A model generated the notes under the pieces. The model did no database searches, was not told the origin of the DNA, and saw only the letters and a program-made list of their open reading frames with translations. The position numbers and the translations under genes were made by a program. This document shows, one piece after another, positions 13,898-55,317 of a stretch of DNA of 64,000 nucleotides. The stretch's first letter is position 1. Every line of letters begins with the position of its first letter. This DNA comes from Scyliorhinus canicula (taxonomy: Eukaryota), in contig NC_052158.1 in the NCBI RefSeq assembly GCF_902713615.1, positions 17,790,546 to 17,854,545 of the forward strand, read 5' to 3'.

Positions 13898-15124
13898 AGG
13901 GTGTGGGCAGTGAGAATTCAAAGTTCGAGTCATGTCTGGGTTCAAAGCTGATGAGGATCAGTGAGCACTGTGGGGGCTGAAATTATCAACAGGTGACAAC
14001 CAGTGTCAGATTCCAGTAGATTGATTTCAGGGCGGTGACTGACTTCCTACAACTTGTCTTAACCGAGGTCCTGGACTGGAGAGAGATCTTTATTCTCAGT
14101 GAATTGATGCTGATCTGCGCTGGGTGAATGGAGCTGAGGGAATGGGGAGGAATTTCTTCAGACACTCTGTCCCTGAGCTTCCACAGTTCCTGGGCTGAGG
14201 AAAGTGGTGATGTCCCATCACCGTCTGTACACGTCCCGTCATTCACTCCTATTTTTCTCACAGTAACAGCTTCCCAATCATGTTCTCTTCCAGTTCCAGC
14301 ATCTCTCACCCTGGACCCAGAGACAGCAAACAACCTACTCATCATTTCCCAGGATCTGACTAGTGTGAGGGACGGAAATGAGGAGCAAGCTCGACCTGAT
14401 CATCCGGGAAGATTTGATAAACGCTTCTATGTGTTGAGTTCCCAGAGTTTCACGTCAGGGAGACACTACTGGGAGGTGGGTCTTGGAAACAAACCTCGCT
14501 GGATTGTGGGTGTCTGCAGAGAGTCTGTCAACAGGAAAGAACTAATCATTCCTTCACCTGAGAATGGATTTTGGGTCATCGCCCGGCTTCCTGACTGCAA
14601 ATCATTGAAAATCCCGGATGCCATCTCGCAGCTGAAAGTGAAACCCCGGAAGTTGGGAATTTACCTGGATTATGAGGGAGGACAGGTATCATTTTATGAT
14701 GCTGAGGACATGTCTCACCTGTACACCTTCACTGACACATTCACCGAGAAACTCTATCCCATCTTTAATCCCTTATAATAATTGCTCTGGTGATAACTCT
14801 GAGCCACTCACACTGCTCTCTGGGTAACGCAGTGGGAGACGCTTTGGGAGGTCGGAGTTTTAGTGAGAAGCCTGATTCACTGTCTGAACAGCTCATGTTG
14901 TCCTGATTCTCTGCTGTGTGCTGTCAGGGGGTGAGTGTGTTTCTGTATTGTTTATTCTGTAAATTTAACTCAGATTCTCCACCCATCCCACTGTCCCGAT
15001 CTCAATCTAATGGGACCCATAAACACTGGGCTGGTATAGAATGAAGCAAAATCTCCTGAATTGTGGTAACTGTGCCCAGCTCTCGAACAATTCATTGTGA
15101 ATCTTTATTTTGTTTCCTCCCTTG

Positions 15125-15130
15125 AATAAA
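15125..15130 (+). terminator. Candidate polyadenylation signal of copy 1 (paralogs 29056-29061, 40768-40773, 57777-57782)
   Basis: AATAAA retained in all four units ~300 bp after the stop position (excluding insertions). Confidence 0.5.
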
Positions 15131-16054
15131 TATTTTATTTGAAGACGGGACTGACACCTGGTGTGATGATTATTGATTCAGTGAATGAGCAGAAAGAATG
15201 TTTTTTCACTCCTCTATGGGATGTGGGTGTCGCTGGCTGAGCCCTCGTTGCCCATCCCTAATTGCCCTTTGAGAAGGTGGTGTAGGTACACCCACAGTGC
15301 TGTTAGGGAGGGAGTTCCAGGATTTGGACCCAGCGACAGTGAAGGAACAGCCAATATGTTTCCAAGTCAGGATGGTGAGTGACTGGAAGGGAACCTCCAG
15401 GTGGTGGTATCAGGAAAGAGAATATCAGAATAGGTTCCGGAGTACGACATGTGACCATTCGGGAAGATCCTGTCTGAACATCAACACCGACTCCACTTTC
15501 CCATCCTATCCCTTCATTCCCTTTGTACTCAGGAATATATCGATCTATGTGTTGAATATACTCACTGACATCTCACCGAGGTGGAGAATTCCAAAGATTC
15601 CCAACTCTCTCTGCGGAAGGAATTTCTCCTCATCTCAGTCTTAAATGGACGACCCCTTATCCTGATTCTGTGACCCCTCGTTCTAGACCAATCTCAGCAT
15701 CTACCCTGTCAGGATCTCTGAGAATTGTACATGTTTCAATAAGATCATCTCTTATTCTTCTAAACTTCAAAGAATATAGAGCCATCCAACTCAATCCCTC
15801 CTCATATCGGAAAACCCTTTCATCTCAAGAATCAATTCCGTGAACCTTCATTGCTCCCTCTAAGGTAAGTATATGTTTCCTCAGGTAAGGAGACTGAAAC
15901 TGTCCACAGCCCTCCAGCTGTGACCACACTCAATCCCTGTTACATTGCAGCAAGACTTATTCTCTTATACTTCAACCCCATTGTAATAAAGGCTAAGATA
16001 CCATTTCCCTCCCTAATTGTTCACTGTCTCTGCTTGTTACCTTTCTCTGTTTCA

Positions 16055-17090
16055 GTGTATTTCGGGGTGTTGCCATTTAGGGTAGGTGGGGATAGGTTTA
16101 GGGATCTGGGGGTCCAGGTGACAGGGGAGGGGAGCGACAATGCATAAGTGGAACTTAACAAAGTTGGTGGAGGAGATAAAGGAGGACTTTAGGATGTGGG
16201 ATACACAGCGCCTGATGCTGGCAGGAAGGGTCCAAGTGGTTAAAGTGAATGTCTTGCCAAGGTTGTTATTTGGATTTCAGATGCTCCCGATGTTTATTCC
16301 AAAGGCTTTCTTCCGGAGTTTGGTCAATGTAATTTGGGAGTTTATTTGGGCGGGGAAGGTGCCAAGGGTGAAGTGGGCCCTGATACAGAGGCAGGGAGAG
16401 AAAGGGGACTTGGCGTTACCGAACCTGCTGTACTATTATTGGGTGGTGAATGTGGAGAAAGTGAGGTGATAGTGGGAGGGAGAGAGGCCGGAATGGGTTA
16501 GGATGGAGGAGGAATCCTGTAGGGGGCCCAGCTTCAGGGCCATGGTAACGGTGGCACTACCGTTGTCACCGAGGGGATATACGGAGAGCCGGGTTGTACA
16601 GTCCACGGTTAGGGTGTGGAACCAGCTGAGGAGACACTTTAGGATGGAGGGGATGTCGGTGCTAATACTGTTGTGTGTGAACCACGGATTCAAACCGGGG
16701 GAGACGGATGGCATGTACAGGAGGTGGAGAGAGGTGGGGTTGATGAGGGCCAGGGGTTTATATTTAGAGGAGAGGTTCGCCAGTCTGGAAGAGCTGTGGG
16801 AGAGGGTGGAGCTCCCGAGGGGGGGGGGGGGGGGGTGATTTTAGGTATTACCAAGTGAGGGGCTTTGCATGGAAGATGTGGAAAGAGTTCCCCAGGCTGC
16901 CGAAGTCGCCCTATTGGAATGGCTGCTGCTTCCGGACGTGGAGGAGGAGGGGAGGATTGGGGACATATTGGGAGAGCAGGGGGAATGCACATGGTGAGGA
17001 TTAAGGAGAAATGGAAGGAGGAGTTGGGGGTAGATAGGGGAATGGGGAATGAGGCGCTGGGCGGGGTGAATTTGGCCTCTTGTGCGCTTA
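16055..17090 (+). mobile_element. L1-clade ORF2 C-terminal fragment (5' part of an insertion split by an inversion)
   Basis: FRDLGVQV, LAGRVQVVKVNVLPR and LALPNLLYYYW motifs; starts right after TSD half TTCTCTGTTTCA (16043-16054). Confidence 0.85.
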
Positions 17091-17091
17091 T

Positions 17092-18524
17092 GAGTTACAG
17101 ACTGGAATCTAATCGAGGGGTTCAGATGGTTTATATATACAATGATGGATATCTGGGAGTGAGTTACAGACTGGAATCTAATCGAGGGGTTTAGATGGTT
17201 TATATATAGAATAATGGACATCTAGGAGTGAGTTACAGACTGGAATCTAATCGAGGGGTTCAGATGGTTTATATATAGAATAATGGATATCTGGGAGTGA
17301 GTTACAGAGTGGAATCTAATCGAGGGGTTCAGATGGTTTATATATAGAATAATGGATATCTGGGAGTGAGTTACAGACTGGAATCTAATCGAGGGGTTCA
17401 GATGGTTGAAATATAGAATAATAGATATCTTGGAGTGAGTTACAGACTGGAATCTAATCGAGGGGTTCAGATGGTTTATATATAGAATAATGGATATCTG
17501 GGAGTGAGTTACAGAGTGGAATCTAATCGAGGAGTTCAGATGGCTTATATATACAATAATGGATATCTGGGATTGAGTTACAGACTGGAATCTAATCGAG
17601 GGGTTCAGATGGTTGATATATAGAATAATAGATATCTGGGAGTGAGTTACAGACTGGAATCTAATCGAGGGGTTCAGATGGTTGATATATAGAATAATAG
17701 ATATCTGGGAGTGAGTTACAGACTGGAATCTAATCGAGGGGTTTAGATGGTTGATATATAGAATAATAGATATCTGGGAGTGAGTTACAGAGTTGAATCT
17801 AATCGAGGTGTTCAGATGGTTTATATACAATAATGGATACCTGGGAGTGAATTACAGACTGGAATCTAATTGAGGGGTTCAGAAGGTTTATATATAGAAT
17901 AATAGAACATAGAACAGTACAGCACAGAACAGGCCCTTCGGCCCTCGATGTTGTGCCGAGCAATGATCACCTTACTCAAACCCACGTATCCACCCTATAC
18001 CCGTAACCCAACAACCCACCCCTTAACCTTACTTTTTTAGGACACTACGGGCAATTTAGCATGGCCAATCCACCTAACCCGCACATCTTTGGACAGTGGG
18101 AGGAGACCGGAGCACCCGGAGGAAACCCACGCACACACGGGGAGGACGTGCCGACCCCGCACAGACAGTGGCCCAGCCGGGAACCGAACCTGGGAACCTG
18201 GAGCTGTGAAGCATTTATGCTAACCACCATGCTACCGTGCTGCCCCTAATGGATAGCTGGGAGTGAGTTACAGACTGGAATCTAATCGAGGGGTTCAGAT
18301 GGTTTATATATAGAATAATGGATACCTGGGAGTGAGTTACAGACTGGAATCTAATCGAGGGGTTCAGATGGTTTATATATAGAATAATGGATACCTGGGA
18401 GTGAGTTACTGACTGGAATCTAATCGACGGGTTCAGATGGTTTATATATAGAATAATGGATACCTGAGAGTGCGTTACAGACTGGAATCTAATCGAGGGG
18501 TTCAGATGGTTTATATATAGAATA
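17092..18524 (-). repeat. 69-bp minisatellite in inverted orientation (~16 units, interrupted by a SINE)
   Basis: Reverse complement of the intron-2 unit. Confidence 0.93.
17904..18246 (-). mobile_element. tRNA-derived SINE with CR1-type 3' tail (HE1-like)
   Basis: A-box TGGTTAGCA and B-box-like GGTTCGGTTCC on the minus strand; the tail matches the CR1 3' end at ~4820-4880. Confidence 0.88.
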
Positions 18525-18526
18525 GT

Positions 18527-18840: not shown

Positions 18841-18909
18841 ATTTATTGCCTCACTCAATCTGGTCTCCAACTGAAAGGCAGCTGACAGTGCAAGTGGTCA
18901 TTCACAGCA

Positions 18910-18928
18910 CTGCCAGCAGATGGCGGCG
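18910..18928 (+). promoter_or_regulatory. CTCF-like core motif, forward
   Basis: CTGCCAGCAGATGGCGGCG matches the CCASYAGRKGGCRS consensus. Confidence 0.6.
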
Positions 18929-20946: not shown

Positions 20947-20986
20947 AGCTGGAACAGGGAAGGAGAGAGAGACTCTGGGCACTGAG

Positions 20987-23900
20987 ATGGCATCTCCAGA
21001 TCTCACACAGGAACTAACCTGTCCCATCTGTCTGGAGATATTCACCCACCCGGTGTCTCTGGAATGTGGACATCATTTCTGCAGCTCCTGCATCTCCCAG
21101 AGTTGGCAGAAGGTCCCGGGAGATGTTTCCTGCCCCCAGTGTCGACAGGTCTTCACCCAGAGGAACGTCAGGCCCGCTCGGACCCTCATTAACATCGTGG
21201 AGAAGGTCAGAGAGGTGAAGGTGACACAGCCACAGGAGGAGTTTTACTGTCAGGAACACGAGGAGAAGCTGAAACTCTTCTGTGAAGATGAACACAAAGC
21301 GATATGTCTGGTGTGTGGGATGTCCAGAGCTCATAAGACGCACAGTGTGATCCCAATAAAGGAGGCAGCCCAGATATACAAGGTACTGGATCACTGCTCC
21401 TGGCACAGGTAGATGGAGAAGAGGGACAGGGTGTAAGTCACAGAGAGAGAGAGAGAGAGAGAGAGTGTTTGTAGAATGTGGGGAGGGGAAGAGAGGGCGG
21501 GAGAGACAGGGATAGGGAAGGGGAGAGGGATGTTGAAAGAGGAGAGGGTTGAAGCGAGTAGAGGATTGATTGAGGAGGGGAATTAACCTGGAGGAGGATA
21601 ATTGCAATAAACAGAATTAACCCACAGCTTCTACTCTGTTTATTGAGTGTAATCAATCCTGAGAATATCTCCTTCTCTACCTCACTGGTCTAACTCTATT
21701 TAAACACAGCAAACCCCTCCAGAAGGTGACAATGATTGTTTCCTTTGACAAACCCATTTCTGTCCTTTCTATCTCAGAACAAGTTAGAAACATCATTGGA
21801 AACTCTGCAGAAGCAAATGGACCTCAGTCTTCACAGTAAAAGAGAACAAGAGGATGGGATTTTCCACATGAAGGTAGGAGAGTGTCCTTTAGGCATTGTG
21901 TAAACTTCCCTGTGTTTGTTATTGAGAGTGAGTGAGCTTCTCACACAGTCAGAGAGAGAGTTTTACTGAATAAAATGTTGCTGCTCCAAAGTACACTGCG
22001 GGCTACTCCCTGAACTGCAATATAAGGGACCGTCTGTAAATTGCAGATTATTATAACAATGTGTAAATATCTTATTTTCTCTCTCAAGCCAATCCCATCG
22101 ATTGATGAAATAAATCATGTCTGTAACTCACTCCCAGGTATCCATTATTCTATATATAAACCATCTAAACCCCTCGATTAGATTCCAGTCTGTAACTCAC
22201 TCCCAGGTATCCATTATGCTATATATAAACCATCTGAACCCCTTGATTCGATGCCAGTCTGTAACTCACTCCCAGGTATCCGTTATTCACTTTTATACAA
22301 TGTGAACCCCTCAATTAGATTCCAGTCTGTAACTCACTCCCAGGTATCCATTATTCCATATGTAAACCATCTGAATTCCACAATTAGATTCCACTTAGTG
22401 ACTCAGCCCTTGATGTCTATTATTTCATAAATAACCACTGGATTCACTTTACAATGTTTGTTTGTAACTCACTCCCAATTAGCCAATATTCCATCAAACT
22501 GTTCAGCCGGCAGTGAGCTGTTATTGTTTGTTATTCGTACTGGATATAAATTTTTATCCCTATATCCCAGTGGACAGAGACAAGGGACTCTGGGATTATA
22601 AATGTTGTTTATTCCGTTCTGTATTCAATCTGTTCCAGGCTGAAGTTGACAGACTGAGAAATGAAATCAACAGTGAATTTGAAAAGATGCACAAGTTCCT
22701 GTTTGAGAAGGAGGAGCTGATGAAAGCAGAGTTGGAGAGAAAAAGCAATAAAATATTCGAGGAAATGGAGAACAATTTAACCAACACCATGGAGGAAATC
22801 TCTTCTCTTGAAGCAGCAATAAGAGATCTTAAATCGAGGCTGGAGGTACAACTGGCCCCAGAGTTCCTCAAGGTACAAAATCTCTTTGTCTTGTCCAGTG
22901 AAACATTCCAGAGACTGAGGGCGGGCACTCTGACCTTTAACCTCTGGGTTTGGATTAGGCCTCAGTCTGATTGGTTGGATGATTGTCTCTTTGTGCTGTC
23001 AGTAAGGGTCCAATGGGAAATGAGGTGAGATAATCTCAGTGTGATTCCTATACACAGCGTAACCACGGCGCTGATTGATGATTGGACTCCGAGAGAGCTG
23101 GGCTGGGAACTGGAGATGTTTACACTGCTGCAGATGGAGTTCCACTGAGATCTGCTGAGGACGGGTTAAAGTGCATTATTGCAGGGGTGATGGGGCTATG
23201 GTTAGAGAGATAGGAATGGGAGCAGGTAAGTGCAGCACGCCCAGCTGGACAACAGTGGAGAGGCGATGGAGGGGGATGGTGTGATCGACCGTGTCAAAGG
23301 CTGCAGACAGACCAAGAATAAAGAGGAGGGAAAGTTTGTAAGGATGGGTTTTTTGGGGAGAGGGGTGAAGATGTAGATTTAAATGAGAGAGAGACAACAC
23401 CTGAAGAGATGAATCAGTTTACAATCCCAGCTAACATGGGGGCCAGGAGGGGCGGTTGGGAGATCAGTAGTTTTTGGGAATAGGATGGAGGGGACAGGAG
23501 GTGGGTCTGATGGACAAGATGATCTCAGAGAGGGAATGAAAGGAAAAAATAAAAGTTATTTTCTAACTGAAAACTTGGTCTCTCAATTTCTACTCGAGAT
23601 TTACAACAAGAACTCTTTAATCTGACTCGATCATATCTATTCTGTTCCTTTCCCCTCAGGATATTCAAGACCTATTGATGAGGTAAGCAGATATAAAGAA
23701 ACAGTTTTGTGATGTGATCACTGCTGTCTCTCTAACACACACTGATTTGCCAGACCTGTTTTTACAGGAGTCAGATGGTGTTTCACAAGCCTGGAACTGT
23801 CTCCACTCAGTTACCTGTGGATATCGCTGGTGAACCAGTCAAATACCTCAAAGTGTGGAAGGAAATGAGAGCAGTGATTTCACCAGGTATCATTCTCTGT

Positions 23901-26900
23901 ATATTACTGTCTCCCTGCTGTTATCCACGTGATTAATGATGTTTGACACACTGATGAAATGATCAGAAGATCAGAAGGAATAAGAACAGGAGTGGTCCAG
24001 CCCAGTGAACCTGCTCTGATTTTTGATAAGATCATGTCTGATCTAATTGGGGCCTTTACTCCACTTTCCTGCCTGTCCCAGATGACCCTTAACCCCCTTG
24101 CTGATCAACAATCTATGGAACTCGATCATGAATCAATGACCCAGCCTCTGCTGCTCTCTGTGGTAGAGAATTCCAAAGACTAATATCCCTCTCCGAGAAG
24201 GAATTCCTCCTCATCTCTGTCTTCAATAGAGGCCCCTTCATTTGATGCTGTGTCACCGACACCTCGATTGTCCCAGAGATCAAACATCCTCCCAGCATCG
24301 ACCCTGGTGAAGGAATCCCCTCAGAATGTTATGTTTCAATAAGATAACCTCTTATTCTTCTAAACTCCAGTGAGTACAGACCAACCAGCTCAACCTTTCC
24401 TCATAAGGCAATCCCTTCATCCCAGGAATCAGCCCAGTGAACCTTCTCTGAACTCTGTCCCATGGGAGTCTCTCCCTCCTGATGTAAGGAGATCAGATCT
24501 GAACACAGTACTCAAGCTGCAGTCTCACCAATCCCCTGTATAGTTGGAGCAAGTCTTCCCTACTTTACACTCCATCTCTTTTCCAATAAAGGCCAACATT
24601 CCATTTGTTTTCCTCATTCCTTGCTGTACCTGGACACTAGCTTTTAGTGATTGATGTACAAGGTCCCCCAGGTCCCTCTGTGCTGCAGCATTCTGCTGTC
24701 TCTTTCTATTGAAATAATTTGCTGCATTTCTATTCTTCCTGCCAAGGTGGACAACCTCCCATTTTCCCACATTATACTCAATCTGCTAAATCTTTGCCCA
24801 CTCACTTAACCGGTCTATATCCCTCCGCAGACACTTTGTATCCTCCTCACAACTTCCCGAACTCACTTTGTGGCATCAGTAAATTTGGCTACAGTATTTT
24901 CCATTTCTTCATCCAATCGGGAATATTGATCATAAATAGTTGCATCCCCATCACTGATCAGTAATCTTGGGAATTTGCAAAGATTACAACCAATGCATCC
25001 ACTTTCTCTCCCGCCCCTCCTTTAACATCCTGGGATGCAGGACATCAGGTCCAGGGGACAAGTTGTCTTTAATCCCATCGCTTTTCCAGATACTTTTTCT
25101 CTGATGATCATGATTGTTTTAAGTTTATCCCTCCCTTTCCTTCCTGCTTTTCCCCAACACTGGATGACCCCAGCTGTTGTTCTCTGTATATTGTTGGGTA
25201 TTTCTCTGTCCCCAGATTATAAGAAAACATTTATTTAATGATATTGCCAGTCCTCAGCACAGAGCTCCGATTGGTCCCCACATGCCCTGTTGCTAAGACT
25301 GATACTCTTCCCCTCACTCCATATACCAGTTACCATGACTACATTCTGTCCCCTTCTGTGACCCAAGGACAGGAACTCCCAACCTAGGCAGACTTCGCCT
25401 AATGTCTCTTCCTCAGGATTTTGTCTTGCAGTTCAGAGAAGTGTGAGGTTAATGTATTGGGAGAGGGAAGATATGACAAGGGAATAGACAATAAGTGGTA
25501 AGATACTGAGAGGTGTGGAGGAACAGAGGGAGATTTGAGTTTACCTCCACAGATTCAGGACAGGTGGATAAAGTGGTGATGATAACACACCGGATATTTT
25601 GCTGTACTGACCAAGGAATAGAGAATAAGAGCAGGGATGTAATGTCAGAACTTTATTAAACACTAGTTAGTCTAGAACTTGAGTACTTTATATCTTTCTG
25701 GTCAGTGTGTTGGAGAGGTTACCAAGGAGATTAATGAGGGTGTTGGATGGTTCAGAGAACTTGAGTTCTGAGTTATGATTGGATAGATTGGGGTTGTTTT
25801 CATTGGATCAGAGGAGAAGGAGGGGAGATTTAATTGAGGTGTATAAAATTAGGAGTGTCCAGATAGAGTGGAAAGGAAATCCCGAGTCCCATTGCCTCGG
25901 GGTCCCTGATCAGGGAGAATAGATACAGGATAAGAGGGAGGAGGGTTAAAGGGATTATTTTCACACACAATGTGATCTGGATCTAGGACTCTCAGCCTGA
26001 AAGGCTGATAGAGGTAGAAACCCTCATAACATTTATAAAGTAATCAGATCTGCACTGAAAGTTTTGTAACCAAAAGAGATATGGAGCAGGAAGCTGGAAA
26101 CCGGGATTGGGCTGGAGAATTCTTTTTGAGCCGAATCTCACAGTTTGCTCTGAAATGACCTCTTTCTGTGAATCCCAGAATATTTACAAAACGAGAAGTG
26201 ACCATTCGGCCCATTGTGTTCCTGCTAGCTCACTGCAAGACCAACTCACCGAGGGCCATTCCTTCACCTTTTTCTCTGTAGCTCTGCAGATTTTTCTTCT
26301 TCAGTTAATGATTCAATTCCATATGAAAGCTGTGATTGAATCTGATTCCACCACAGTGCATTCCTGATCCTAAACACTCGCTGTGTGAAAAGGTTTTCCC
26401 TCACGCTAATATGGCTTCTTTTGTCAACCAATTTAAATTCTGTGTCCTCTGGTTCTCTTCTCTCAGGGGAACCACCTCAGCTTCTCCCATCTGTGTCCGT
26501 AACTGAATTTCCTCCTCCCAGGAACCATCGCGCTGAATGTTTCCTGCACTCTCTCTAATGCCCTCACATCCTCCCTCAAAGTGTGTTGCCCAGATTAGAA
26601 TTGAGGGTTAACCAGTGTTTTATACAGATATAACTTTGTCACTCTATTCTGTGTTAATAGATGCTGCATTCTTTATTAACTACTCTCTCTCCTTGTCCTG
26701 TCACAGCTAATTGTGAAATGATATCCTGTGCATCAAGGTTTGGGTCATTAATTTACATCAGGAAAGTCAGAACCCTTTGAATACCAATGTATATCTATCT
26801 TCAGTCTGAACAAGCAACAACTGTCATTCACCCCGTTTCATATCCATGTTGCTACTGTCCTCGTTATTCTGTATATTTTCTATGTTTCTGCCTGTTAGGG

Positions 26901-38774: not shown

Positions 38775-38890
38775 TCTACAACCCCCTTGTCCTGACTGAG
38801 ATCTCAGAGGGGGGGGTGTAGGGCTGGAGGAGGAGAGCCCACCCCCTTGTCCTGGCTGAGAGCTCGGAGGGGGGGGTGTAGTGCTGGAGG
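38775..38890. repeat. 58-bp VNTR, ~2 units, copy 3
   Basis: Same unit as 13230-13575. Confidence 0.8.
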
Positions 38891-38906
38891 AAGTGACAGA
38901 GATAGG

Positions 38907-41234: not shown

Positions 41235-41991
41235 TGCTGTTAGGGAAGGAGTTCCAGGATTTGGACCCAGCGACAGAGAAGGAGTGGCCGATATGTTTCC
41301 AAGTCAGGATGGTGAGTGACTGGAAGGGAACCTCCAGGTGGTGGTATCAGGAATGAGAATATCAGAATAGGTTCCGGAGTAGGACATGTGGCCATTCTGG
41401 AAGATCCTGTCTGAACATCAGCATCGACTCCACTTTCCCATCCTATCCCTTCATTCCCTTTGTACTCAGGAATATATCGATCTCTGTGAGGAATATACTC
41501 ACTGACATCTCACCGAGGGAGAGAATTCCAAAGATTCACAACTCTCTCTGAGGGAAGGAATTTCTCCTCATCTCAGTCTTAAATGGACGGCCCCTTTATC
41601 CTGATTCTGTGACCCCTCGGTCTAGACCAGTCTCCATCTATCCTGTCAGGATCTCTGAGAATTGTATATGTTTCAATAAGATCACCTCTTATTCTTCTAA
41701 ACTCCAAAGAATATAGAGCCATCCAACTCAATCCCTCCTCATAACGGAAAACCCTTTCATCCCAAGAATCAATTCTGTGAACCTTCATTGCTCCCTCTAA
41801 GGTAAGTATATGTTTCCTCAGGTAAGGAGACTGAAACTGTCCACAGCCCGCCAGCTGTGTCCACACTCAATCCCTGTTACATTGCAGCAAGACTTATTCT
41901 CTTATACTCCAACCCCATTGTAAAAAAGGCTAAGATACCATTTCCCTCCCTAATTGTTCACTGTATCTGCTTGTTACCTTTCTCTGCTTCA

Positions 41992-43010
41992 GTTTATTTC
42001 GGGGTGTTGCCATTTAGGGTAGGTGGGGATAGGTTTAGGGATCTGGGGGTCCAGGTGACAGGGGAGTGAGCGACAATGCATAAGTGGAACTTAACAAAGT
42101 TGGTGGAGGAGATAAAGGAGGACTTTAGGATGTGGGATACACAACGCCTGATGCTGGAGGGAAGGGTCAAAGTGGTTAAGGTGAATGTCTTGCCAAGGTT
42201 TTTATTTGGATTTCAGATGCTCCCGATTTTTATTCCGAAGGCCTTCTTCCGGAGTTTGGTCAATGTAATTTGGGAGTTTATTTGGGCGGGGAAGGTGCCA
42301 AGGGTGAAGTGGGCCCTGATACAGAGACAGGGAGAGAAAGGGGACTTGGCGTTACCGAACCTGCTGTACTATTATTGGGTGATGAATGTGGAGAAAGTGA
42401 GGTGATAGTGGGAGGGAGAGAGGCCGGAATGGGTTAGGATGGAGGAGGAGTCCTGTAGGGGGCCCAGCTTCAGGGCCATGGTAACGGTGGCACTACCGTT
42501 GTCACCGAGGAGATATACGGAGAGCCCGGGTGTACAGTCCACGGTTAGGGTGTGGAACCAGCTGAGGAGAGACTTTAGGATGGAGGGGATGTCGGTGCTA
42601 ATGCTGTTGTGTGTGAACCACGGATTCAAACCGAGGGAGACGGATGGCATGGACAGGAGGTGGAGAGAGGTGGGGTTGATGAGGGCCTGGGATTTATATT
42701 TGGAGGAGAGGTTCGCCAGTCTGGAAGAGCTGTGGGAGAGGGTAGAGCTCCGGAGGGGGGAGTGATTTCAGGTATTTCCAAGTGAGGGGCTTTGCACGGA
42801 AGGTGTGGAAAGGGTTCCCCAGGCTGCCAAAGTCGCCCTATTGGAACGGCTGCTGCTTCCGGATGTGGAGAAGGAGGGTAGGATTGGAGACATATTGGGG
42901 GGGAGCAGGGGGAATGCACATGGCGAGGATTAAGGAGAAATGGGAGGAGGGGTTGGGGGTAGATAGAGGAGTGGGGAATGAGGCACTGGGCGGGGTGAAT
43001 TTGATCTTTC
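41992..43010 (+). mobile_element. L1 ORF2 fragment paralogous to 16055-17090
   Basis: Same junction after TTCTCTGCTTCA (41980-41991); its inverted 3' end lies at ~44173-44360. Confidence 0.85.
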
Positions 43011-43016: not shown

Positions 43017-43206
43017 GAGTTCCAGACTGGAATCTAATCGAGGGGTTCAGATGGTTTATATATAGAATAATGGATATCTGGGAGTGAGTTACAGAGTGGA
43101 ATCTAATCGAGGGGTTCAGATGGTTTATATATAGAATAATGGATATTTGGGAGTGAGTTACAGACTGGAATCTAATCGAGGGGTTCAGATGGTTTATATA
43201 TAGAAT
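43017..43206 (-). repeat. 69-bp minisatellite, inverted, ~3 units
   Basis: Reverse complement of the intron-2 unit. Confidence 0.88.
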
Positions 43207-43208
43207 AG

Positions 43209-45928: not shown

Positions 45929-48900
45929 ATGGCATCTCCAGATCTCACACAGGAACTAACCTGTCCCATCTGTCTGGAGATATTCACCCACCCGGTGTCT
46001 CTGGAATGTGGACATCATTTCTGCAGCTCCTGCATCTCCCAGAGTTGGCAGAAGGTCCCGGGAGATGTTTCCTGCCCCCAGTGTCGACAGGTCTTCACCC
46101 AGAGGAACGTCAGGCCCGCTCGGACCCTCATTAACATCGTGGAGAAGTTCAGAGAGGTGAAGGTGACACAGCCACAGGAGGAGTTTTACTGTCAGGAACA
46201 CGAGGAGAAGCTGAAACTCTTCTGTGAAGATGAACACAAAGCGATCTGTGTGGTGTGTGGGATGTCCAGAACTCATAAGACGCACAGTGTGATCCCAATA
46301 AAGGAGGCAGCCCAGATATACAAGGTACTGGATCACTGCTCCTGGCACAGGTAGATGGGGAAGAGGGACAGGGTGTAAGTCACAGAGAGAGAGAGTGTTT
46401 GTAGAATGTGGGGAGGGGAAGAGAGGGCTGGAGAGACAGGGATAGGGAAGGGGAGAGGGATGTTGAAAGAGGAGAGGGTTGGAGCGAGTAGAGGATTGAT
46501 TGAGGAGGGGAATTAACCTGGAGAAGGATAATTGCAATAAACAGAATTAACCCACAGCTTCTACTTTGTTTATTGAGTGTAATCAATCCTGAGAATATCT
46601 CCTTCTCTACCTCACTGGTCTAACTCTATTTAAAAACAGCAAACCCCTCCAGAAGGTGACAATGATTGTTTCCTTTGACAAACCCATTTGTGTCCTTTCT
46701 GTCTCAGAACAAGTTAGAAACATCATTGGAAACTCTGCAGAAGCAAATGGACCTCAGTCTTCACAGTAAAAGAGAACGAGAGGATGGGATTTTCCACATG
46801 AAGGTAGGAGAGTGTCCTTTAGGCTTTGTGTAAACTTCCCTGTGTTTGTTATTGAGAGTGAGTCAGCTTCTCACACAGTCAGAGAGAGAGTTTTACTGAA
46901 TAAAATGCTGCAGCTCCAAAGTACACTGCGGGCTGCTCCCTGAACTGCAATATAAGGGACCGTCTGTAAATTGCAGATTATGATAACAATGTGAAAATGT
47001 CTTAATTTCTCTCTCAAGCCAATCCTATCGATTGATGCAATAAATCTTGTCTTTAACTCATTCCCGGGGATCTATTATTCTATATATAAACCATCTGAAC
47101 CCCTCGATTATATTCCAGTCTGTAACTCACACCCAGGTATGCATGGGGCAGCACGGTAGCATGGTGGTTAGCATAAATGCTTCACAGCTCCAGGGTCCCA
47201 GGTTCGATTCCCGGCTGGGCCACTGTCTGTGTAGAGTCTGCACGTCCTCCCCGTGTGTGCGTGGGTTTCCTCCGGGTGCTCCGGGTTCCTCCCACAGTCC
47301 AAAGACGTGCGGGTTAGGTGGACTGGCCATGCTAAATTGCCCGTAGTGTCCTTAAAAGTAAGGTTAAGGGGGGGGGGGGGGGGTTGTTGGGTTACGGGTA
47401 TAGGGTGGATACGTGGGTTTGAGTAGGGTGATCATTGCTCGGCACAACATCGAGGGCCGAAGGGCCTGTTCTGTGCTGTACTGTTCTATGTTCTATGTAT
47501 ATATAAACCAACTGAACCCCTCAATTAGAGTCCAGTCTGTAACTCACTCCCAGGTATCCATTATTCTATACATAAACCATCTGAACCCCTCGATTAGATT
47601 CCAGTCTGTAACTCACTCCCAGGTATCCATTATTCTATATATAAACCATCTGAACCCTTCGATTAGATTCCAGTCTGTAACTCACTCCCAGGTATCCATT
47701 ATTCTATATATAAACCACCTGAACCCCTCAATTAGAATCCAGTCTGTAACTCACTCCCAGGTATCCATTCTGAATTCCTCAATTAGATTCCACTTAGTGA
47801 CTCAGCCCTTGATGTCTATTATTTCATAATTAACCACTGGAATCACTTGACAATGTTTGTTTGTAACTCACTCCCATATAGCCAATATCCCATCAAACTG
47901 TTGAGCAGACAGTGGGCTGTTATTATTTGTTATCCTTGCTGGATATAAATTTTTATCCCTATATCCCAGTGGACAGAGACCAGGGACACTGGGATAATAA
48001 ACATTGTTTATTCCGTTCTGTATTCAATCTGTTCCAGGCTGAAGTTGACAGACTGAGAAATGAAATCAACAGTGAATTTGAAAAGATGCACAAGTTCCTG
48101 TTTGAGAAGGAGGAGCTGATGAAAGCAGAGTTGGAGAGAAAAAGCAATAAAGTATTCGAGGAAATGGAGAACAATTTAACCAAAACCATGGAGGAAATCT
48201 CTTCTCTTGAAGCAGCAATAAGAGATCTTAAATCGAGGCTGGAGGTACAACTGGCCCCAGAGTTCCTCAAGGTACAAAATCTCTTTGCCTTGTCCAGTGA
48301 AACATTCCAGAGACTGAGGGCGGGGACTCTGACCTTTAACCTCTGGGTTTGGATTAGGCCTCAGTCCGATTGGTTGGATGATTGTCTCTTTGTGCTGTCA
48401 GTAAGGGTCCAATGGGAAATGAGGTGAGATAATCTCAGTGTGATTCCTATACACAGCGTAACCACGGCACTGATTGATGATTGGACTCCGAGAGAGCTGA
48501 TCTGGGAACTGGAGATGTTTACACTGCTGCAGATGGAGTTCTACTGAGATCTGCTGAGGATGGGTTAAAGTGCATTATTGCAGGGGTGATGGAGCTATGG
48601 TTAGAGAGATAAGAATGGGAGTGGGTGAGGGTAGAACGCCCAGCTGGACAACAGTGGAGAGGCGGTGGAGGAGGATGGCGTGATCGACCGTGTCAAAGGC
48701 TGCAGACAGACCGAGAATAATGAGGAGGGAAAGTTTGTAAGGATGGGTTTTTTGGGGAGAAGGGTGAAGATGTAGATTTAAATGAGAGAGAGAGCGGCAA
48801 CACCTGAAGAGATGAAACAGTTTACAATCCCAGCTAACATGGGGACCAGGAGGGGAGGTTGGGAGATCAGTAGTTTTTGGGAATTGGATGGAGGGGACAG

Positions 48901-51900
48901 GAGGTGGGTCTCATGGACAAGATGATCTCCGAGAGGGAATGAAAGGAAAAAATAAAAGTTATTTTCTAACTGAAATCTTGGTGTCTCAATTTCTACTCGA
49001 GATTTACAACAAGAACTCTTTAATCTGACTCGATCATATCTATTCTTTTTCATTCCCTTCAGGATATTCAAGACCTGTTGATGAGGTAAGCAGATATAAA
49101 GAAACAGTTTTGTGATGTGATCACTGCTGTCTCTCTAACACACACTGATTTCCAGACCTGTTTTTACAGGAATCAGATGGTGTTTCACAAGCCTGGAACT
49201 GTCTCCACTCAGTTACCTGTGGATATCGCTGGTGAACCATTCAAATATATCAAAGTGTGGAGGGAAATGAGAGCAGTGATTTCACCAGGTATCATTCTCT
49301 ATATATTACTATCTCCCTGCTGTTATCCACGTGATTAATGAGGTTTGACACACTGATGAAATGATCAGAAGATCAGAAGGAATAAGAACAGGAGTTGTCC
49401 AGCCAATTGAACCTGCTCTGATTTTTGATCAGATCATGTCTGATCTGATTGGGGCCTTTACTCCACTTTCCTGCCTCCCAGATGACCCTTAACCCCTTGT
49501 TGATCAACAATCTATGGAACTCGGTCATGAATCAATGACCCAGCCTCTGCTGCTCTCTGTGGTAGAGAATTCCAAAGACTAATATCCCTCTCCGAGAAGG
49601 AATTCCTCCTCATCTCTGTCTTCAATAGAGGCCCCTTCATTTTATGTTGTGTCACCTACACCTCGATTGGCCCAGAGATCAAACATCCTCCCAGCATCTA
49701 CCCTGGTGAAGGAATCCCCTCAGAATGTTATGTTTCAATAAGATAACCTCTTATTCTTCCAAACTCCAGTGAGTACAGACCAACCAGCTCAACCTTTCCC
49801 CATAAGGCAATCCCTTCATCCCAGGAATCAGCCCAGTGAACCTTCTCTGAACTGTGTCCAATGACAGTCTCTCCCTCCTGATGTAAGGAGATCAGATCTG
49901 AACACAGTACTCAAGCTGCAGTCTCACCAATCCCCTGTAAAGTTGGAGCAAGTCTTCCCTACTTTACACTCCATCCCTTTTCCAATAAAGGCCAACATTC
50001 CATTTGTTTTCCTCATTCCTTGCTGTACCTGGACACTAACGTTTAGTGATTGATGTACAAGGTCCCCCAGATCCCTCTGTACTGCAGCATTCTGCTGTCT
50101 CTTTCTACTGAAATAATTTGCTGCTTTTCTATTCTTCCTGCCAAGGTGGACAACCTCCCATTTTCCCACATTATACTCCATCTGCTAAATCTTAGTCCAC
50201 TCACTTAACCGGTCTATATCCCTCCGCAGACACTTTGTATCCACCTCACAACTTCCCAACCTCACTTAGTGGCATCAGAAAATTTAGCTACAGTACATTT
50301 TGTTTCTTCATCCAATCGGGAATATTGATCATAAATAGTTGTATCCCCATCACTGATCAGTAATCTCGGGAATTTGGAAATATCACAACCAATTAATCCA
50401 CTTTCTCTCCAGCCCCTCCTTTAAAATCCTGCGATGCAGGACATCAGGTCCAGGGGAGAAGTCGTCTTTAATCCCATTAGTTTTCCAGATACTTTTTCTC
50501 TGGTGATCATGATTGTTTTAAGTTTATCCCTCCCTTTTCCCTCCTGCTTTCCCCCAACACTGGATGACACCAGGTGTTGTTCTCTGTATAATTTGGGGTA
50601 TTTTATTTCCCCAGGTTATAAGAAAACATTTATTTCATGATCTTTTGACATGTCTAAGGGACATTGCCAGACCTCAACACTGAGCACTGATTGGTCCCCA
50701 CATGTCCCGTTGTCAACACTGATACACTCGGGCAGCATGGTGGCGCAGTGGTTAGCATTGCTGCCTCACGGCGCCGAGGTCCCAGGTTCGATCCCGACTC
50801 TGGGTTACTGTCCCTGTGGAGTTTGCACATTCTCCCCGTGTATGTGTGGGTTTCACCCCCACAACCTAAAAGATGTGCAGGGGAGGTGGATTGGCCAGGC
50901 TAAATTGCCCCTTAATAAAAAATAATATTAAAAAACACTGATACACTTCCCTTCACTCCATATACCAGTTACCATGACTACACTCTGTCCCCTTCTGTGA
51001 CCAAGGACAGGAAATCCCAACTTAGGCAGACTTCACCTTCTGTCTCTTCCTCAGGGTTTTTGTAAATGGAACTCAGTTCAGAGAAGTGTGAGGTTCATGT
51101 ATTGGGAGAGGGAAGATAAAGCAAGGGAATAGACAATAAGTGGTAAGATAGTGAGCGTTGTGGAGGAACAGAGGGAGCTTTGAATTTATGTCCACAGATG
51201 CCGGACAGGTGGATAAAGTGATGCAGATAACACACCGGATATTTTCCTGTACTGACCACGGAATAGAAAATAAGAGCAGCGAGATAATGTAGGAACTTTA
51301 TTAAACACTAGTTAGTCTACAGCTAGAGTACTTTGTATCTTTCTGGTCAGTGTGTTGGAGAGGTTACCGAGGAGATTAATGAGGGTGTTGGATGGATCAG
51401 AGAACTTGAGTTGTGAGTTATGATTGGATGGATTGGGATGGTTTTCATTGGATCCGAGAAGGCTGAGGGGAGATTTAATTGATGTGTATAAAATTAGGGG
51501 TGTCCTGAGTGGAAAGGAAGCCCCGAGTTCCATTACCTCGGGATCCATGATCAGGGAGAGTAGATACAGGGTAAGGGGGAGGAGGGTAAAAGGGGATTAT
51601 TTTCACTCAGGGTGTGGTCTGGATCTGGGAAAGGAAGATTGAGGCAGAATCGCTCATCACATTTATAAAGTAATCAGATCAACACTAAAGGTGCCGACAG
51701 GGTTACGGAGCAGGAACTGGAAACCGGGATTGGGCTGGAGAATTAATTTGCAGCCGAATCAGGTTGGTCTGGAATTGCGTTTTTCTGTGAATCCCAGAAT
51801 GTTTACAAAACAGGAGGAAACCAATCGGCCCATTGTGTTCCTGCTAGCTCGTTGCAAGATCAACTCCCCAGGACCATTCCTTCACCTTATCTCTGTACCT

Positions 51901-54900
51901 CTGAAGATTATATAGATACATAGAAGCAGGAGGAGGCCTTTTGGCCCTTCAAGCCTGCTCCGCCATTCATCACGATCATAGCTGATCATCCAACTCAATA
52001 GCTTAAACCTGCTTTCTCCCTTAATCTTTTGATTCCATAATCTGGTTAACCTTCGCTGCACTCCCTCGACAGCAAGAACATTGTTTCTCAGAAAAGGAGA
52101 CCAAAACTGCACACAATTCCCAGGTGTGGCCTCACCAAGGCCCTGTATAATTGCAGCAACACATCCCTGCTTCTATACTCGAAACCTCTTGCAATGAAGG
52201 CCAACATACCATTAGCCTTCTTTACAGCCTGCTGCACCTCCAGCATGCTTACCTTCAGCGACTGGTACACAAGGACATCCAGGTCCTTCTGCACACTCCC
52301 CTCTCCCAATGTACACACACCCAGGTAGTAATCTGCCTTCCTGTTTTTGCTTCCAAAGTGAATAACCTCACACTTATCCAAATTATACTGCATCTGCCAT
52401 TTTTTTGCCCACTCGCCCAACCTGTCCAGATCATGCTGTAGCATCCCTGCATTCTCGTCACAGTTCACAATTTGAAGAATAAAGGGGTATGGTGTTCGGG
52501 TGCGAAATTTTAGCTGAGTCCACAATTGATTAGCCATGATCTCATTGAATGGCGGAGCAGGTTCGAAGGGCCAGATGGCCTACTCCTGCTCCTAGTTCTT
52601 ATGTTATGTTCATCATCCCACCCAACTTGGTATCATCTGCAAACTTTGAGATGTTACATTTTGTTCCCTCATCCAAATCATTCATATATATTGTGAATAG
52701 CTGAGGTCCCAGCACCGATCCCTGTGGTACCCCACTGGTTACTGCCTGCCAATTTGAAAAGCCATTAATTCCTACTCTGGTTTCCTCTCTGCCAACCAGT
52801 TTTCTATCCACCTCAATACATTTCCCCCATCCCATGCGCTTTCATTTTGCACAATAATCTCTTATACAGGACTTTGTCAAACGCCTTCCGAAAGTCCAAA
52901 TATACCACATCGACTGGCTCCCCCTTGTCAACTGTACTGGTTACCTCTTCAAAGAATTCCAATAGATTTGACAAGCATGATTTCCCTTCATAAATCCATG
53001 CTGACTCTGACTGATCCTGCCATTGATTGTTCCTCATCAGTTAATAATTCAATTCCATATGAAAGCAGTGATTCAATCTGATTCCACCACAGTGCATTCC
53101 TGACCCTAAACACTTGCTGTGTGAATAGGTGTTTCCTCGCGCTGATATGGCTTCTTTTGTCAATCAGTTTAAATTCTGTGTCCTCTGGTTCTCTTCTCTC
53201 AGGGGAACCACCTCAGCTTCTCCAATCTGTGTCCGTAACTGAAGTTCCTCCTGCCAGGAATCATTGTGGTGAATGTTTCCTGCACTCTCTCTAATGCCCT
53301 CACATCCTCCCTCAAAGTGTGTTGCCCAGAACAGAGTTGAGGGTTAACCAGTGTTTTATACAGATATAACTTTGTCACTCTATTCTGTGTTAATAAAGCC
53401 TAAGATACTGCATTCTTATTAATCACTCTCTCTCAACTTGTCCTGTCACTGCTAATTGTGAAATGATGTTCTGTACATCAAGGTTTAGATCATTAATTTA
53501 CACCAGGAAGAGTCGGGTGCGAACACTGACCCCTGTGAACACTGATGTATAATCTATGTCCGGTCTGACAACAACCAACAACTCATTCACCCCATTTCAT
53601 ATCCATGTTGCTGCTATCCTCGTTATTCTGTACATTTTCTCTGTTTCTGTCTGTTAGGGTGACTGTTCCTCTGTTGCCACGGAGACCAGGGAACATACGA
53701 GGAGATTACAGAACAAAACTGTTGTATTGAGAGAGCTGAAGTAACTTCTCCGTCATTTAGATGGGAATTTTCTACTGGGATCACTCCTTCCGAGTGTGAA
53801 TGGAATTCCCAGTGGGAATGTAGCTGTTGTCCGTGTTATACCATCACTGAGTCAGAAAGCTGTAGATTTTTGTCCCATTCCAGAATCTGGAGCAGGAAGT
53901 CCAGACTGACAATCCCAGCTCAGTACTGAGGAAGTGCTGCAGTATTGGAGGAGCCTCTTTCAGCTGAGACATTACATCTTCTCAGCTGGAGAGCAATGAT
54001 CCAGTGGCTGGAGTTTGAAGAGGAGGAGGAGAGATCACCCCCTTGTCCTGGCAGAGATCTCAGAGGGGGGTGGAGGGCTCGAGTGGGAGAGCCCACCCCC
54101 TTTGTCCGAGCTGAGATCTCGAAGGGGGTGTAGGGCTGGAGGAGGAGAGCTCACTCCCTTGTCCTGGCTGAGATCTCGGAGAGGGGTTGTAGGGCTGGAG
54201 GGGGAGAGCCCACCCCCTTGTCCTGACTGAGATCTCAGAGCGGGGTGGAGGGCTGGAGTGGGAAAGCCCACCCCCTTGTCCTGACTGAGATCTCGGAGGG
54301 GGATGGAGGGCCGGAGGGGGAGAGCCCACTCCCTTGTCCTGGCTGAGATCTCGGAGGGGGGTGTAGGACTGGAGGAGGTGACAGAGATGGAGTGTGGGCA
54401 GTGAGAATTTTAAGTTCGAGGCATTGCTGGGTTCAAAGCTGATGTGGATCAGTGAGCACTGGGGGGGCTGAAATTATCAACAGGGGACAACCAGTGTCAG
54501 ATTCCAGTAGATTGAGTTCAGGGCGGTGACTGACTTCCTACAACTTGTCTTAACCGAGGTCTTGTACTGGAGAGAGATCTTTATTCTCAGTGAGTTGATG
54601 CTGATCTGTGCTGGGTGAATGGAGCTGAGGGAATGGGGAGGAATTTCTTCAGACACTCTGTCCCTGAGTTTCCACAGTTCCTGGGCTGAGGAAAGTGGTG
54701 ATGTCCCATCACCGTCTGTACATGTCTCGTCATTCACTCCTGTTTTTCTCACAGTAACAGCTTCCCAATCATGTTCTCTTCCAGTTCCAGCATCTCTCAC
54801 CCTGGATCCAGAGACAGCAAACAACCGACTCATCATTTCCCAGGATCTGACTAGTGTGAGGCACGGAAATGAGGAGCAAGATCTCCCTGAACATCCGGGA

Positions 54901-55317
54901 AGATTTGATCAATATGTCTATGTGTTGAGTTCCCAGAGTTTCACATCAGGGAGACACTACTGGGAGGTGGGTCTTGGAAACAAACCTTACTGGATTGTGG
55001 GTGTCTGCAGAGAGTCTGTCAACAGGAAAGCAGACATCACAGAGTCACCTGAGAATGGATTCTGGGTCATCGCCCGGCTTGCTGGCTGCAAATCATTGAA
55101 AATCCTGGATGCCATCTCCCAGCTCAAAGTGAAACCCCGGAAGTTGGGAATTTACCTGGATTATGAGGGAGGACAGGTGTCATTTTACGATGCTGAGGAC
55201 ATGTTTCACCTGTACACCTTCACTGACACATTCACCGAGAAACTCTTTCTCATCTTTAATCCCTGTCATAATAACTCTGGTAATAACCCTGAGCCACTCA
55301 CACTGCTCTCTGGGTAA
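45929..55317 (+). CDS. TRIM copy 4: intact 466-aa RING/B-box2/coiled-coil/PRY-SPRY E3 ligase (class IV, TRIM39/A33-like)
   Basis: Exons 45929-46324, 46708-46803, 48038-48271, 49063-49085, 49170-49288, 54785-55317; same sizes and phases as copy 2, no stops. Confidence 0.92.
47047..47795 (+). repeat. 69-bp minisatellite, intron 2 of copy 4, interrupted by a SINE
   Basis: Same unit as 6319-7710. Confidence 0.9.
47145..47497 (+). mobile_element. tRNA-derived SINE with CR1-type tail (HE1-like)
   Basis: Orthologous to 34171-34522. Confidence 0.9.
50729..50933 (+). mobile_element. Short tRNA-derived SINE with A-rich tail, specific to copy 4
   Basis: 14-bp TSD AACACTGATACACT (50715-50728, 50934-50947); A and B boxes present. 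Confidence 0.87.
51910..53030 (-). mobile_element. Nested or rearranged CR1 RT fragments, specific to copy 4
   Basis: Minus ORFs with [37 protein letters not shown] and RPHL motifs; absent at this position in other copies. Confidence 0.85.
54035..54378. repeat. 58-bp G-rich VNTR, ~6 units, copy 4
   Basis: Same unit as 13230-13575. Confidence 0.9.

Follow-up and report, generated by a model that had tools for sequence, protein, structure and literature searches.

Hypervariable B30.2 loops are a feature of well-documented multigene TRIM families in teleosts (finTRIM, btr and hltr) and mammals (TRIM5/22); for cartilaginous fish, the literature found holds only a remark on copy number (PMC7677710). 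Here, a 64,000 nucleotide (nt) stretch of the genome of the catshark Scyliorhinus canicula (RefSeq assembly GCF_902713615.1, contig NC_052158.1; coordinates 17790546–17854545, forward strand), referred to below as the window, was analysed and found to contain four tandem TRIM genes in which a constrained scaffold is combined with fast-evolving B30.2 loops, segments are exchanged between copies, and the genes undergo birth-and-death turnover, an evolutionary pattern of which we are confident. The genes were already annotated; the pattern, documented before in teleosts and mammals, is documented here in a cartilaginous fish. Full-text searches turned up no account of the cluster, nor of any shark TRIMs with hypervariable loops, and the catshark genome paper makes no mention of TRIMs.

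Among the systems described previously, the zebrafish btr genes are TRIM39-like class-IV TRIMs, partly in tandem, with hypervariable B30.2 sites located in loops, especially that between strands beta2 and beta3 (Boudinot et al. 2011, PMC3137616). Positive selection was detected in 4.5–8.5% of btr sites using the PAML models M2a and M8, and GARD placed breakpoints inside the B30.2 exon (PMC3137616). The finTRIM (ftr) genes represent a large lineage-specific expansion in which variable and selected B30.2 sites fall on the variable loops of TRIM21 and the hypervariable regions of TRIM5alpha, with the loop VL1 as a hot spot (van der Aa et al. 2009, PMC2657112); they are teleost-specific, have no elephant-shark counterpart and encode two B-boxes (PMC2657112). 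Primate TRIM5alpha and the TRIM5/6/22/34 group are tandem class-IV TRIMs with four hypervariable B30.2 regions that are under recurrent positive selection and set target specificity (PMC2657112, PMC2151084). The remark on cartilaginous fishes concerns a 'TRIM69' family with an average of 18 copies, versus fewer than 3 in ray-finned fishes, and 13 copies on the bamboo-shark chromosome that carries the major histocompatibility complex (Zhang et al. 2020, PMC7677710).

Four tandem class-IV TRIM genes

Self-BLAST of the window revealed four colinear units of ~8–10 kb each that are 92–96% identical, introns included. Exon models were built with the guidance of a full-length relative (P0010, 87% identical), found in a protein search with the B30.2 exon, and all four units proved to be six-exon class-IV TRIM genes encoding a RING, one B-box, a coiled coil and PRY/SPRY. 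Canonical AG/GT borders were found throughout, with exon (E) lengths of 396–402 nt (E1), 96 nt (E2), 234 nt (E3), 23 nt (E4), 119 nt (E5) and 533 nt (E6). The first exons of the four copies start at 5201, 20987, 32958 and 45929, and the models, which rest on AG/GT borders and exon alignments, are as follows (window coordinates).

5201–14778, + strand: copy 1 (c1), damaged as assembled; E1 5201–5602, E2 5986–6080, E3 7948–8181, E4 8978–9000, E5 9086–9204, E6 14294–14778
20987–28554, + strand: copy 2 (c2), intact, 466 amino acids (aa); E1 20987–21382, E2 21778–21873, E3 22639–22872, E4 23660–23682, E5 23768–23886, E6 28022–28554
32958–40482, + strand: copy 3 (c3), one stop in E3, otherwise open; E1 32958–33353, E2 33736–33831, E3 35132–35365, E4 36142–36164, E5 36250–36368, E6 39950–40482
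45929–55317, + strand: copy 4 (c4), intact, 466 aa; E1 45929–46324, E2 46708–46803, E3 48038–48271, E4 49063–49085, E5 49170–49288, E6 54785–55317
28022–28554 (c2), 14294–14778 (c1), 39950–40482 (c3) and 54785–55317 (c4), + strand: B30.2 (PRY/SPRY) exon, matched by Pfam PRY and SPRY

The joined exons of c2 translate to a protein identical in 466 of 466 residues (100%) to P0154 (XP_038672713, 'zinc-binding protein A33-like isoform X2 [Scyliorhinus canicula]'), hence the splice model agrees with RefSeq. At c4, an annotated gene with a 466-residue product begins exactly at the ATG. An earlier, sequence-only reading of this DNA had proposed a four-copy TRIM array starting at 14294; the four units were recovered, but that position is the start of only the last exon of c1, the first exon of which begins at 5201. 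The spacers 3' of c1 (15193–16752) and c3 (41235–42687) recur at 62443–64000 with 96–97% identity, so the array probably continues past position 64000. As a whole it reaches well beyond the window, which the first reading had missed.

The architecture that had been read from the sequence (RING, B-box, coiled coil and SPRY) was borne out by Pfam matches, colinearity with TRIM72 and AlphaFold2 models containing a long helix and a B30.2 sandwich. The RING, of the N-terminal C3HC4 type, is matched by PF15227, PF13445 and PF00097 at residues 12–52; among 55 relatives, the zinc ligands C12, C15, C27, C35, C49 and C52 are invariant and H29 and C32 nearly so, and all are present in the four copies. 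It is followed by a single B-box of type 2 (PF00643, residues 84–124), in which C88, H91, C99, C107, C110, H116 and H119 are invariant in the same 55 relatives. In the full-length AlphaFold2 model, the coiled coil is a ~110-residue helix (124–232), with further helices at 237–251 and 273–287, and residues 6–464 of the protein align colinearly with structures of full-length TRIM72 (E = 8e-62). The B30.2 domain, encoded by the single 533-nt last exon, was modelled with a confidence (pLDDT) of 91.5. Its best fold matches in a Foldseek search of the PDB were the PRYSPRY domain of TRIM21 (template modelling score 0.89–0.92), pyrin B30.2 and BTN3A1 B30.2, and its best sequence matches were to pyrin B30.2 (E = 5e-47). 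By predicted domain architecture, these are class-IV TRIM E3 ubiquitin-ligase genes, and the encoded proteins would be expected to have E3 ubiquitin-ligase activity and to dimerise through the coiled coil.

Variable patches coincide with B30.2 loops

The RING, B-box and coiled-coil (RBCC) half is 92–96.5% identical between copies at the amino acid level and the B30.2 domain 84–88%, in agreement with the near-identical scaffold described earlier. All five patches quoted in the sequence-only reading as differing between copies were recovered residue for residue in copies 1/2/3/4, at codons 304, 332–335, 358–360, 372–376 and 388–390, and codon 358 is indeed CGC/GGC/CTC/TAC. The variable segments are listed here with coordinates in c2 and offsets from the start of E6, the latter valid for every copy.

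28063–28065 (+41 to +43), + strand: codon 304 (ANN-x), just before the first PRY strand; L/G/R/R in copies 1/2/3/4
28096–28158 (+74 to +136), + strand: hypervariable region 1, codons 315–335, including RFD-xxxx; loop between predicted strands 2 and 3 (VL1)
28225–28233 (+203 to +211), + strand: hypervariable region 2, codons 358–360 (NKP-xWx); four different codons at 358
28267–28281 (+245 to +259), + strand: hypervariable region 3, codons 372–376 (NRK-xxxxx); M2a sites 373 and 376
28315–28323 (+293 to +301), + strand: hypervariable region 4, codons 388–390 (IAR-xxx), where a low-confidence loop begins; M2a sites 388 and 389
28501–28530 (+479 to +508), + strand: variable C-terminal loop, codons 450–459, of differing length among paralogs; 12 variants in 13 S. 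canicula genes

Hypervariable codons were defined from outside the window, a choice made to avoid picking loops after seeing them: in 24 distinct B30.2 sequences from S. canicula and S. torazame, columns with at least 3 residues were taken, giving 45 codons. Nearly all of these (42/45) lie outside predicted strands (P = 5e-7), as do 31 of the 37 B30.2 columns in which the four window copies differ in amino acid (P = 0.004), and 26 of the 37 coincide with the family hypervariable sites (P = 6e-11). The changes are also clustered, as the B30.2 exon contains 16 codons hit more than once, against 7.9 +/- 2.1 expected if the 68 variable nucleotide columns were scattered at random (P = 2e-4). Location in loops was judged from DSSP secondary structure of the model and the pyrin alignment, and from this location we infer that the variable loops are exposed on the surface. 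Residues 390–402 have a pLDDT below 50 in the full-length model.

The codons called as positively selected under model M2a (see below) fall in four places, namely the loop that joins strands 2 and 3, the turn leading into the strand at 359–365, the loop at 366–381, and the beginning of the poorly ordered 388–408 loop. The first corresponds to VL1, a hot spot for the specificity of TRIM5alpha (PMC2657112). In the alignment with pyrin, the numbering of which was anchored by the mutant PDB entries R653H, I641F, M680L and delta-I692, I641 corresponds to codon 335, M680 to codon 375 and I692 to codon 386, and M693–M694 form a two-residue insertion immediately before codon 387. M680 and M694 are high-penetrance positions for familial Mediterranean fever (FMF) in pyrin (PMC10039897).

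Signs of diversifying selection in the B30.2 exon

Non-coding divergence between copies (p) is 0.043–0.066. Mean pairwise difference was 0.005–0.044 for E1–E5, 0.075 for E6 and 0.068 for non-coding columns, and the ratio of nonsynonymous to synonymous divergence (dN/dS) for whole exons was 0.40–0.84 for the RBCC part and 0.66–1.25 for the B30.2 exon. Division of the B30.2 codons into classes resolved the latter value. At the 45 hypervariable codons, the proportion of nonsynonymous differences (pN) among the four window copies was 0.16–0.26, which is 3–6 times the intron value (Fisher P 7e-5 to 4e-14), and the proportion of synonymous differences (pS) was 0.10–0.17, for a pooled dN/dS of 1.8; at the 18 most variable codons the pooled value was 2.65. 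In the other 131 codons, pN was 0.024 and pS was 0.065, equal to the intron value, giving a dN/dS of 0.36. Given this split, the exon average near 1 reflects a mixture of constrained scaffold and fast loops, not decay.

Codon models M0, M1a and M2a were fitted with our own Goldman–Yang code (not PAML) to the DNA of the four window copies, under all three topologies. For the B30.2 exon, M2a was favoured over M1a under each topology (likelihood ratio test (LRT) statistic 32–39, P <= 1e-7), with 8–14% of sites assigned an omega of 9–13.5. Codons 333, 358, 360, 373, 376, 388 and 389 were called under all three topologies, the first in hypervariable region 1 and the next two in region 2; codon 323, also in region 1, was called in two of three. 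Codon 304, which has 6 variants among 13 S. canicula genes, reached an M2a posterior of 0.93 in one topology. For the RBCC part of the four copies, M2a gave no significant improvement over M1a (LRT 0.5–3.5).

Pathogen-driven diversification of the loops had been proposed at the outset, and its selective component is supported by the excess of pN over intron divergence, by a loop dN/dS above 1 against ~0.36 in the scaffold, and by the preference for M2a; loop dN/dS at or below 1 with divergence at the intron level, which would have refuted the proposal, was not what the loops showed. A sliding-window comparison, in which E6 peaks of 0.19–0.22 exceeded the non-coding 95th percentile (0.156) but not the non-coding maximum, was set aside because misaligned repeats inflate the non-coding tail.

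Mosaic units and reshuffled loop variants

The parsimony-informative sites change topology in blocks along the unit, with 25 sites supporting 12|34 in intron 2 and 38 sites supporting 14|23 in intron 5. The topology shifts again within E6, from 12|34 at the 5' end to mostly 13|24 farther on. The units are recombination mosaics, and gene conversion thus contributes to the observed pattern. Neither this mosaicism nor the reappearance of loop variants, differently combined, among paralogs and in S. torazame had been noticed in the first reading.

Among the 13 S. canicula genes, nearly every one carries its own combination of loop variants, with 10–11 variants per patch, and in S. torazame the two commonest variants of each patch occur in all four combinations for nine pairs of patches. 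The loop variants GEITE, RLPDC, RFPDC, NKPYWI and EQDLPD are common to both species. In neighbour-joining trees, the S. canicula copies formed one clade and the S. torazame copies another, for RBCC and for B30.2. Judged on these sequences, the pattern fits a scaffold under concerted evolution with loop diversity that is maintained and reshuffled; independent expansions in the two species are also possible.

Minisatellites were found by Tandem Repeats Finder, with self-BLAST for the 69-bp repeats.

6320–7721 (c1, 20 units), 22119–22393 (c2, 4), 34523–34863 (c3, 5) and 47498–47769 (c4, 4), + strand: 69-bp minisatellite in intron 2
17091–17903, 18247–18524 and 43017–43207, inverted: arrays of the 69-bp minisatellite in the spacers after c1 and c3
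13237–13574 (c1), 27068–27395 (c2) and 54022–54378 (c4), + strand: G-rich 57/58-bp minisatellite in intron 5, ~0.7 kb 5' of the B30.2 exon

The G-rich repeat has ~5–6 units in c1, c2 and c4 and a single unit in c3 (38821–38843), with 16 matches against 0 expected. The minisatellites of intron 2 and of intron 5, the latter beside the mosaic B30.2 exon, are possible substrates for recombination. As the 69-bp repeat is open in one frame, it accounts for long spurious repeating-peptide entries in the list of open reading frames (ORFs).

Damaged copies and their annotation

As assembled, c1 and c3 carry disabling lesions, a feature that the sequence-only reading had missed. In c1, E2 has a single frameshift, and a single premature stop close to the end of E6 costs the last ~16 residues, corresponding to the last strand of the B30.2 domain. 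In c3, a single in-frame stop codon was found in the coiled-coil exon E3, and c2 and c4 are open throughout. Each window copy has only 0–2 private changes over the 255 columns in which 25 further Scyliorhinus paralogs do not vary, and on this ground the lesions look recent. They may be genuine or may be assembly errors, as the sequence alone fits either; the frameshift in E2 of c1 falls within a short run of G residues.

The RefSeq models of c1 and c3 bypass these lesions and are unlikely to correspond to functional proteins, which is a problem for the annotation. The c1 model (P0203, 298 aa) starts within E2, has neither RING nor B-box, and terminates at the premature stop. The c3 model (P0162, 486 aa) uses E1 and E6 of c3 but exits E3 early and adds a cryptic exon, so avoiding the stop. 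RefSeq isoform X1 of c2 (P0277, 474 aa) is spliced to an acceptor lying ~25 nt 5' of the principal site, and so gains 8 residues before PRY (window coordinates 27997–28554), and P0203 uses the equivalent upstream acceptor in c1.

E1 of c1 (5201–5602) contains an in-frame 6-nt duplication that adds an extra VK. Its product is 100% identical to that of exon 1 of P0157 (XP_038672714), the other exons of which lie outside the window. Distant array members thus seem to have exchanged sequence recently.

Distribution of the family

At least 13 annotated genes of this family, 83–92% identical, are found on one S. canicula chromosome (XP_038672708-739 and others), and the genes neighbouring two other paralogs are again TRIMs at a spacing of ~12–14 kb. 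Among the records that encode these proteins, only that of the genome was found. Counting only the best 120 matches, S. torazame has at least 14 genes, Cetorhinus 4, Mustelus 3, Carcharodon 2, and Heterodontus, Pristiophorus and Heptranchias 1 each. The lineage-specific expansion proposed in the sequence-only reading is therefore seen in Scyliorhinus, with at least 13 and at least 14 genes versus 1–4 in the other sharks among these matches. Mobula hypostoma and M. birostris (P0188-P0205) have ~10 paralogs that are 56–60% identical to the catshark proteins and form a sister group; as they make up a clade of their own, theirs looks like an independent expansion.

Outside cartilaginous fish, the best named matches among the best 120 were TRIM39 or A33-like proteins with 41–45% identity. 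NCBI names the family members inconsistently (A33-like, TRIM39-like, nuclear factor 7-like, TRIM69-like), and these labels are no statement of orthology.

Other features of the window

A core resembling the binding site of interferon regulatory factors (IRF) or an interferon-stimulated response element (ISRE), GAAANNGAAA / GAAAGTGAAAG, was found at 5150–5160, 51 nt upstream of the c1 ATG. It is perfect only in c1 and is degenerate in c2–c4, with one or two mismatches. Two further motifs, AAGTGAAAT near -88 and TATAAA at -179 from the ATG, are retained in all four copies.

Several ORFs of the long interspersed nuclear element (LINE) type are present, part of them with Pfam matches.

591–1106, - strand: LINE-type ORF, reverse transcriptase match (PF00078)
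1488–1904, + strand: LINE-type ORF
2498–4786, + strand: LINE-type ORF, reverse transcriptase match (PF00078), preceded by a GDSL-esterase-like ORF
10759–11553, - strand: LINE-type ORF
52088–52537, - strand: LINE-type ORF
58354–60103, + strand: LINE-type ORF, endonuclease/exonuclease/phosphatase domain match at 58354–58863

The ORFs in intron 5 of c1 and c4, which coincide with the longer introns 5 of these copies, have no Pfam match and by eye resemble the C-terminal part of the 2498–4786 ORF. The region 61730–62400 of the window is of low complexity, with a long G/C homopolymer-like run and overlapping Gly- or Pro-rich ORFs on both strands, which are probably not genes.

Interpretation of the loop diversity

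The reading we prefer joins the evolutionary pattern to recognition of pathogens. Purifying selection keeps the RING/B-box/coiled-coil half and the B30.2 beta-sandwich nearly constant, while ~10% of the B30.2 codons, all in loops, outpace neutral DNA and differ in almost every paralog. Copies trade segments by unequal crossing-over or gene conversion, so that paralogs group by species and the loop variants reappear in fresh combinations, also across the two Scyliorhinus species. Birth-and-death turnover is reflected in the two of four copies that have recently acquired disabling lesions although their scaffold is otherwise well preserved. The loops, if TRIM5alpha, TRIM21, pyrin and finTRIM/btr are a guide, would form the ligand-binding face. 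Each paralog would then recognise its own variant of a ligand that evolves fast, pathogen proteins being the most plausible candidates, and when the coiled-coil dimer binds, RING domains would be brought together, leading to ubiquitination of the target or to signalling. Taken as a whole, a diversifying TRIM cluster with a pathogen-recognition function appears probable on balance. For the recognition function of the loops on its own, which is argued from these analogies, we would put the chance at slightly under even.

Several observations weigh against this interpretation. A33, xnf7 and TRIM39, the relatives that lend these genes their names, are not known to act as restriction factors. The ISRE-like core occurs in the 64-kb window at the frequency expected by chance (2 versus 1.8), and its only perfect upstream copy belongs to the damaged c1. 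Within the loops, the individual comparisons of dN with the local pS are not significant (P = 0.08–0.6; four sequences). As the local pS at hypervariable codons is ~2 times the background, part of the excess could come from older or conversion-imported patches and not from new substitutions. Recombination and multi-nucleotide changes, both present here, inflate site-model likelihood tests, and the codon-model code was home-made.

Mosaic ancestry without positive selection could generate a similar picture if conversion homogenised the units and the short loop patches, having escaped or been imported, were merely older. The switches of topology along the unit and within E6, the clustering of paralogs by species, which concerted evolution predicts, the sharing of GEITE, RLPDC, RFPDC and NKPYWI between S. 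canicula and S. torazame, and a pS at the hypervariable codons (0.13) about twice the background of 0.065 are all in keeping with such a history. However, an older neutral segment should give a pN no higher than pS, and pN is still 1.7–2.7 times pS in the same codons; moreover, the patches span 1–5 codons and sit exactly on loops, with the codons between them invariant in 25 paralogs, and to leave such patches unhomogenised would itself require selection for diversity. We therefore consider this history improbable. Relaxed constraint, under which redundant duplicates drift neutrally to pseudogenes, would account for the lesions in two of four copies, a whole-exon E6 dN/dS close to 1 (0.66–1.25) and a mean E6 divergence (0.075) near the non-coding value (0.068). 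Yet the average is a mixture, since the 131 scaffold codons have a dN/dS of 0.36 and the 45 loop codons a pN 3–6 times the intron rate; the changes are clustered (P = 2e-4), the RBCC part is constrained (dN/dS 0.4–0.8), each copy has at most 2 private changes at the 255 family-invariant columns, and the nearly neutral model M1a is rejected. On the split between scaffold and loop rates, the clustering, the constrained RBCC and the failure of M1a, neutral decay was rejected, and we regard it as very improbable indeed.

Selection might also be real and its ligands unrelated to pathogens, such as the endogenous retroelements abundant in this region, parties to a germline or reproductive conflict, or host substrates partitioned among regulators of the A33/xnf7/TRIM39 type. 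Nothing found here links the genes to immunity; they take their names from TRIM39 and from factors of the nucleus or oocyte, LINE-type reverse-transcriptase ORFs abound at the locus, and no convincing interferon-response element was found upstream, the count in the window being at chance. On the other side, the well-studied class-IV TRIM expansions with hypervariable B30.2 loops (TRIM5, finTRIM, btr and hltr) are all tied to pathogen recognition or immune induction (PMC2657112, PMC3137616), a comparison by analogy only, and partitioning of stable host substrates would not yield an omega of ~10 at contact loops. Such ligands appear unlikely.

As an extension of the preferred interpretation, the cluster might serve as a germline cassette library, in which at least 13 tandem genes, made near-identical by concerted evolution, hold short loop cassettes that are kept diverse and reshuffled by gene conversion. 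The damaged c1 and c3 could then still act as donors, and some cassettes may predate the split of S. canicula and S. torazame. This proposal is tentative and we think it rather doubtful; if true, jawed vertebrates would have had, at their base, an innate recognition repertoire of a combinatorial kind. With a near-invariant scaffold, patches of a few codons, introns as a neutral yardstick and a sister species at hand, the array offers unusually clean material for telling positive selection from gene conversion.

Comparison with described TRIM systems

A close relative of the catshark genes (P0212) is named TRIM69-like by NCBI, so the gene set reported as 'TRIM69' in cartilaginous fishes and the set described here may overlap. 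That report is concerned with copy number only and includes no analysis of loops, selection, recombination or pseudogenes (PMC7677710).

The B30.2 domains of pyrin/TRIM20 and TRIM21 are the best sequence and fold matches to the catshark B30.2. The pocket of TRIM21 is made from the corresponding loops (PMC4670481, PMC2657112), and the FMF sites I641, M680 and I692–M694 of pyrin align with, or directly beside, three of the catshark hypervariable patches. However, pyrin and TRIM21 are single-copy genes with conserved ligands, unlike the multigene cluster of the catshark.

Hypervariable B30.2 loops under positive selection are shared with TRIM5alpha, their exposure in the catshark proteins being deduced from loop location. 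Selection on TRIM5 acts mainly between the orthologs of different species, whereas the catshark diversity is spread across many paralogs in one genome. Binding of capsid and restriction have been demonstrated for TRIM5, whereas a comparable role in the catshark is suggested only by analogy.

With finTRIM, the catshark genes have in common a lineage-specific expansion and variable B30.2 loops that include VL1. Membership of finTRIM was considered and rejected, as the catshark proteins have one B-box and the host is a shark, whereas finTRIM is restricted to teleosts (PMC2657112). Induction by virus or interferon is documented for finTRIM.

The likeness to TRIM39 and btr lies in the pattern and in the best named matches, the window containing no other genes for a synteny comparison. 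As in btr, a multigene set has a positively selected and recombining B30.2 domain, here with 8–14% of sites under selection and switches of topology inside E6. The catshark genes differ from btr in belonging to another vertebrate class, in being far more alike (84–97% aa identity), in the restriction of variation to a few very short patches, and in clustering by species. In the catshark, as in finTRIM, btr and hltr, variable and positively selected sites map to equivalent loops, and this signature suggests that a diversified intracellular recognition repertoire either arose repeatedly or dates back to early jawed vertebrates.

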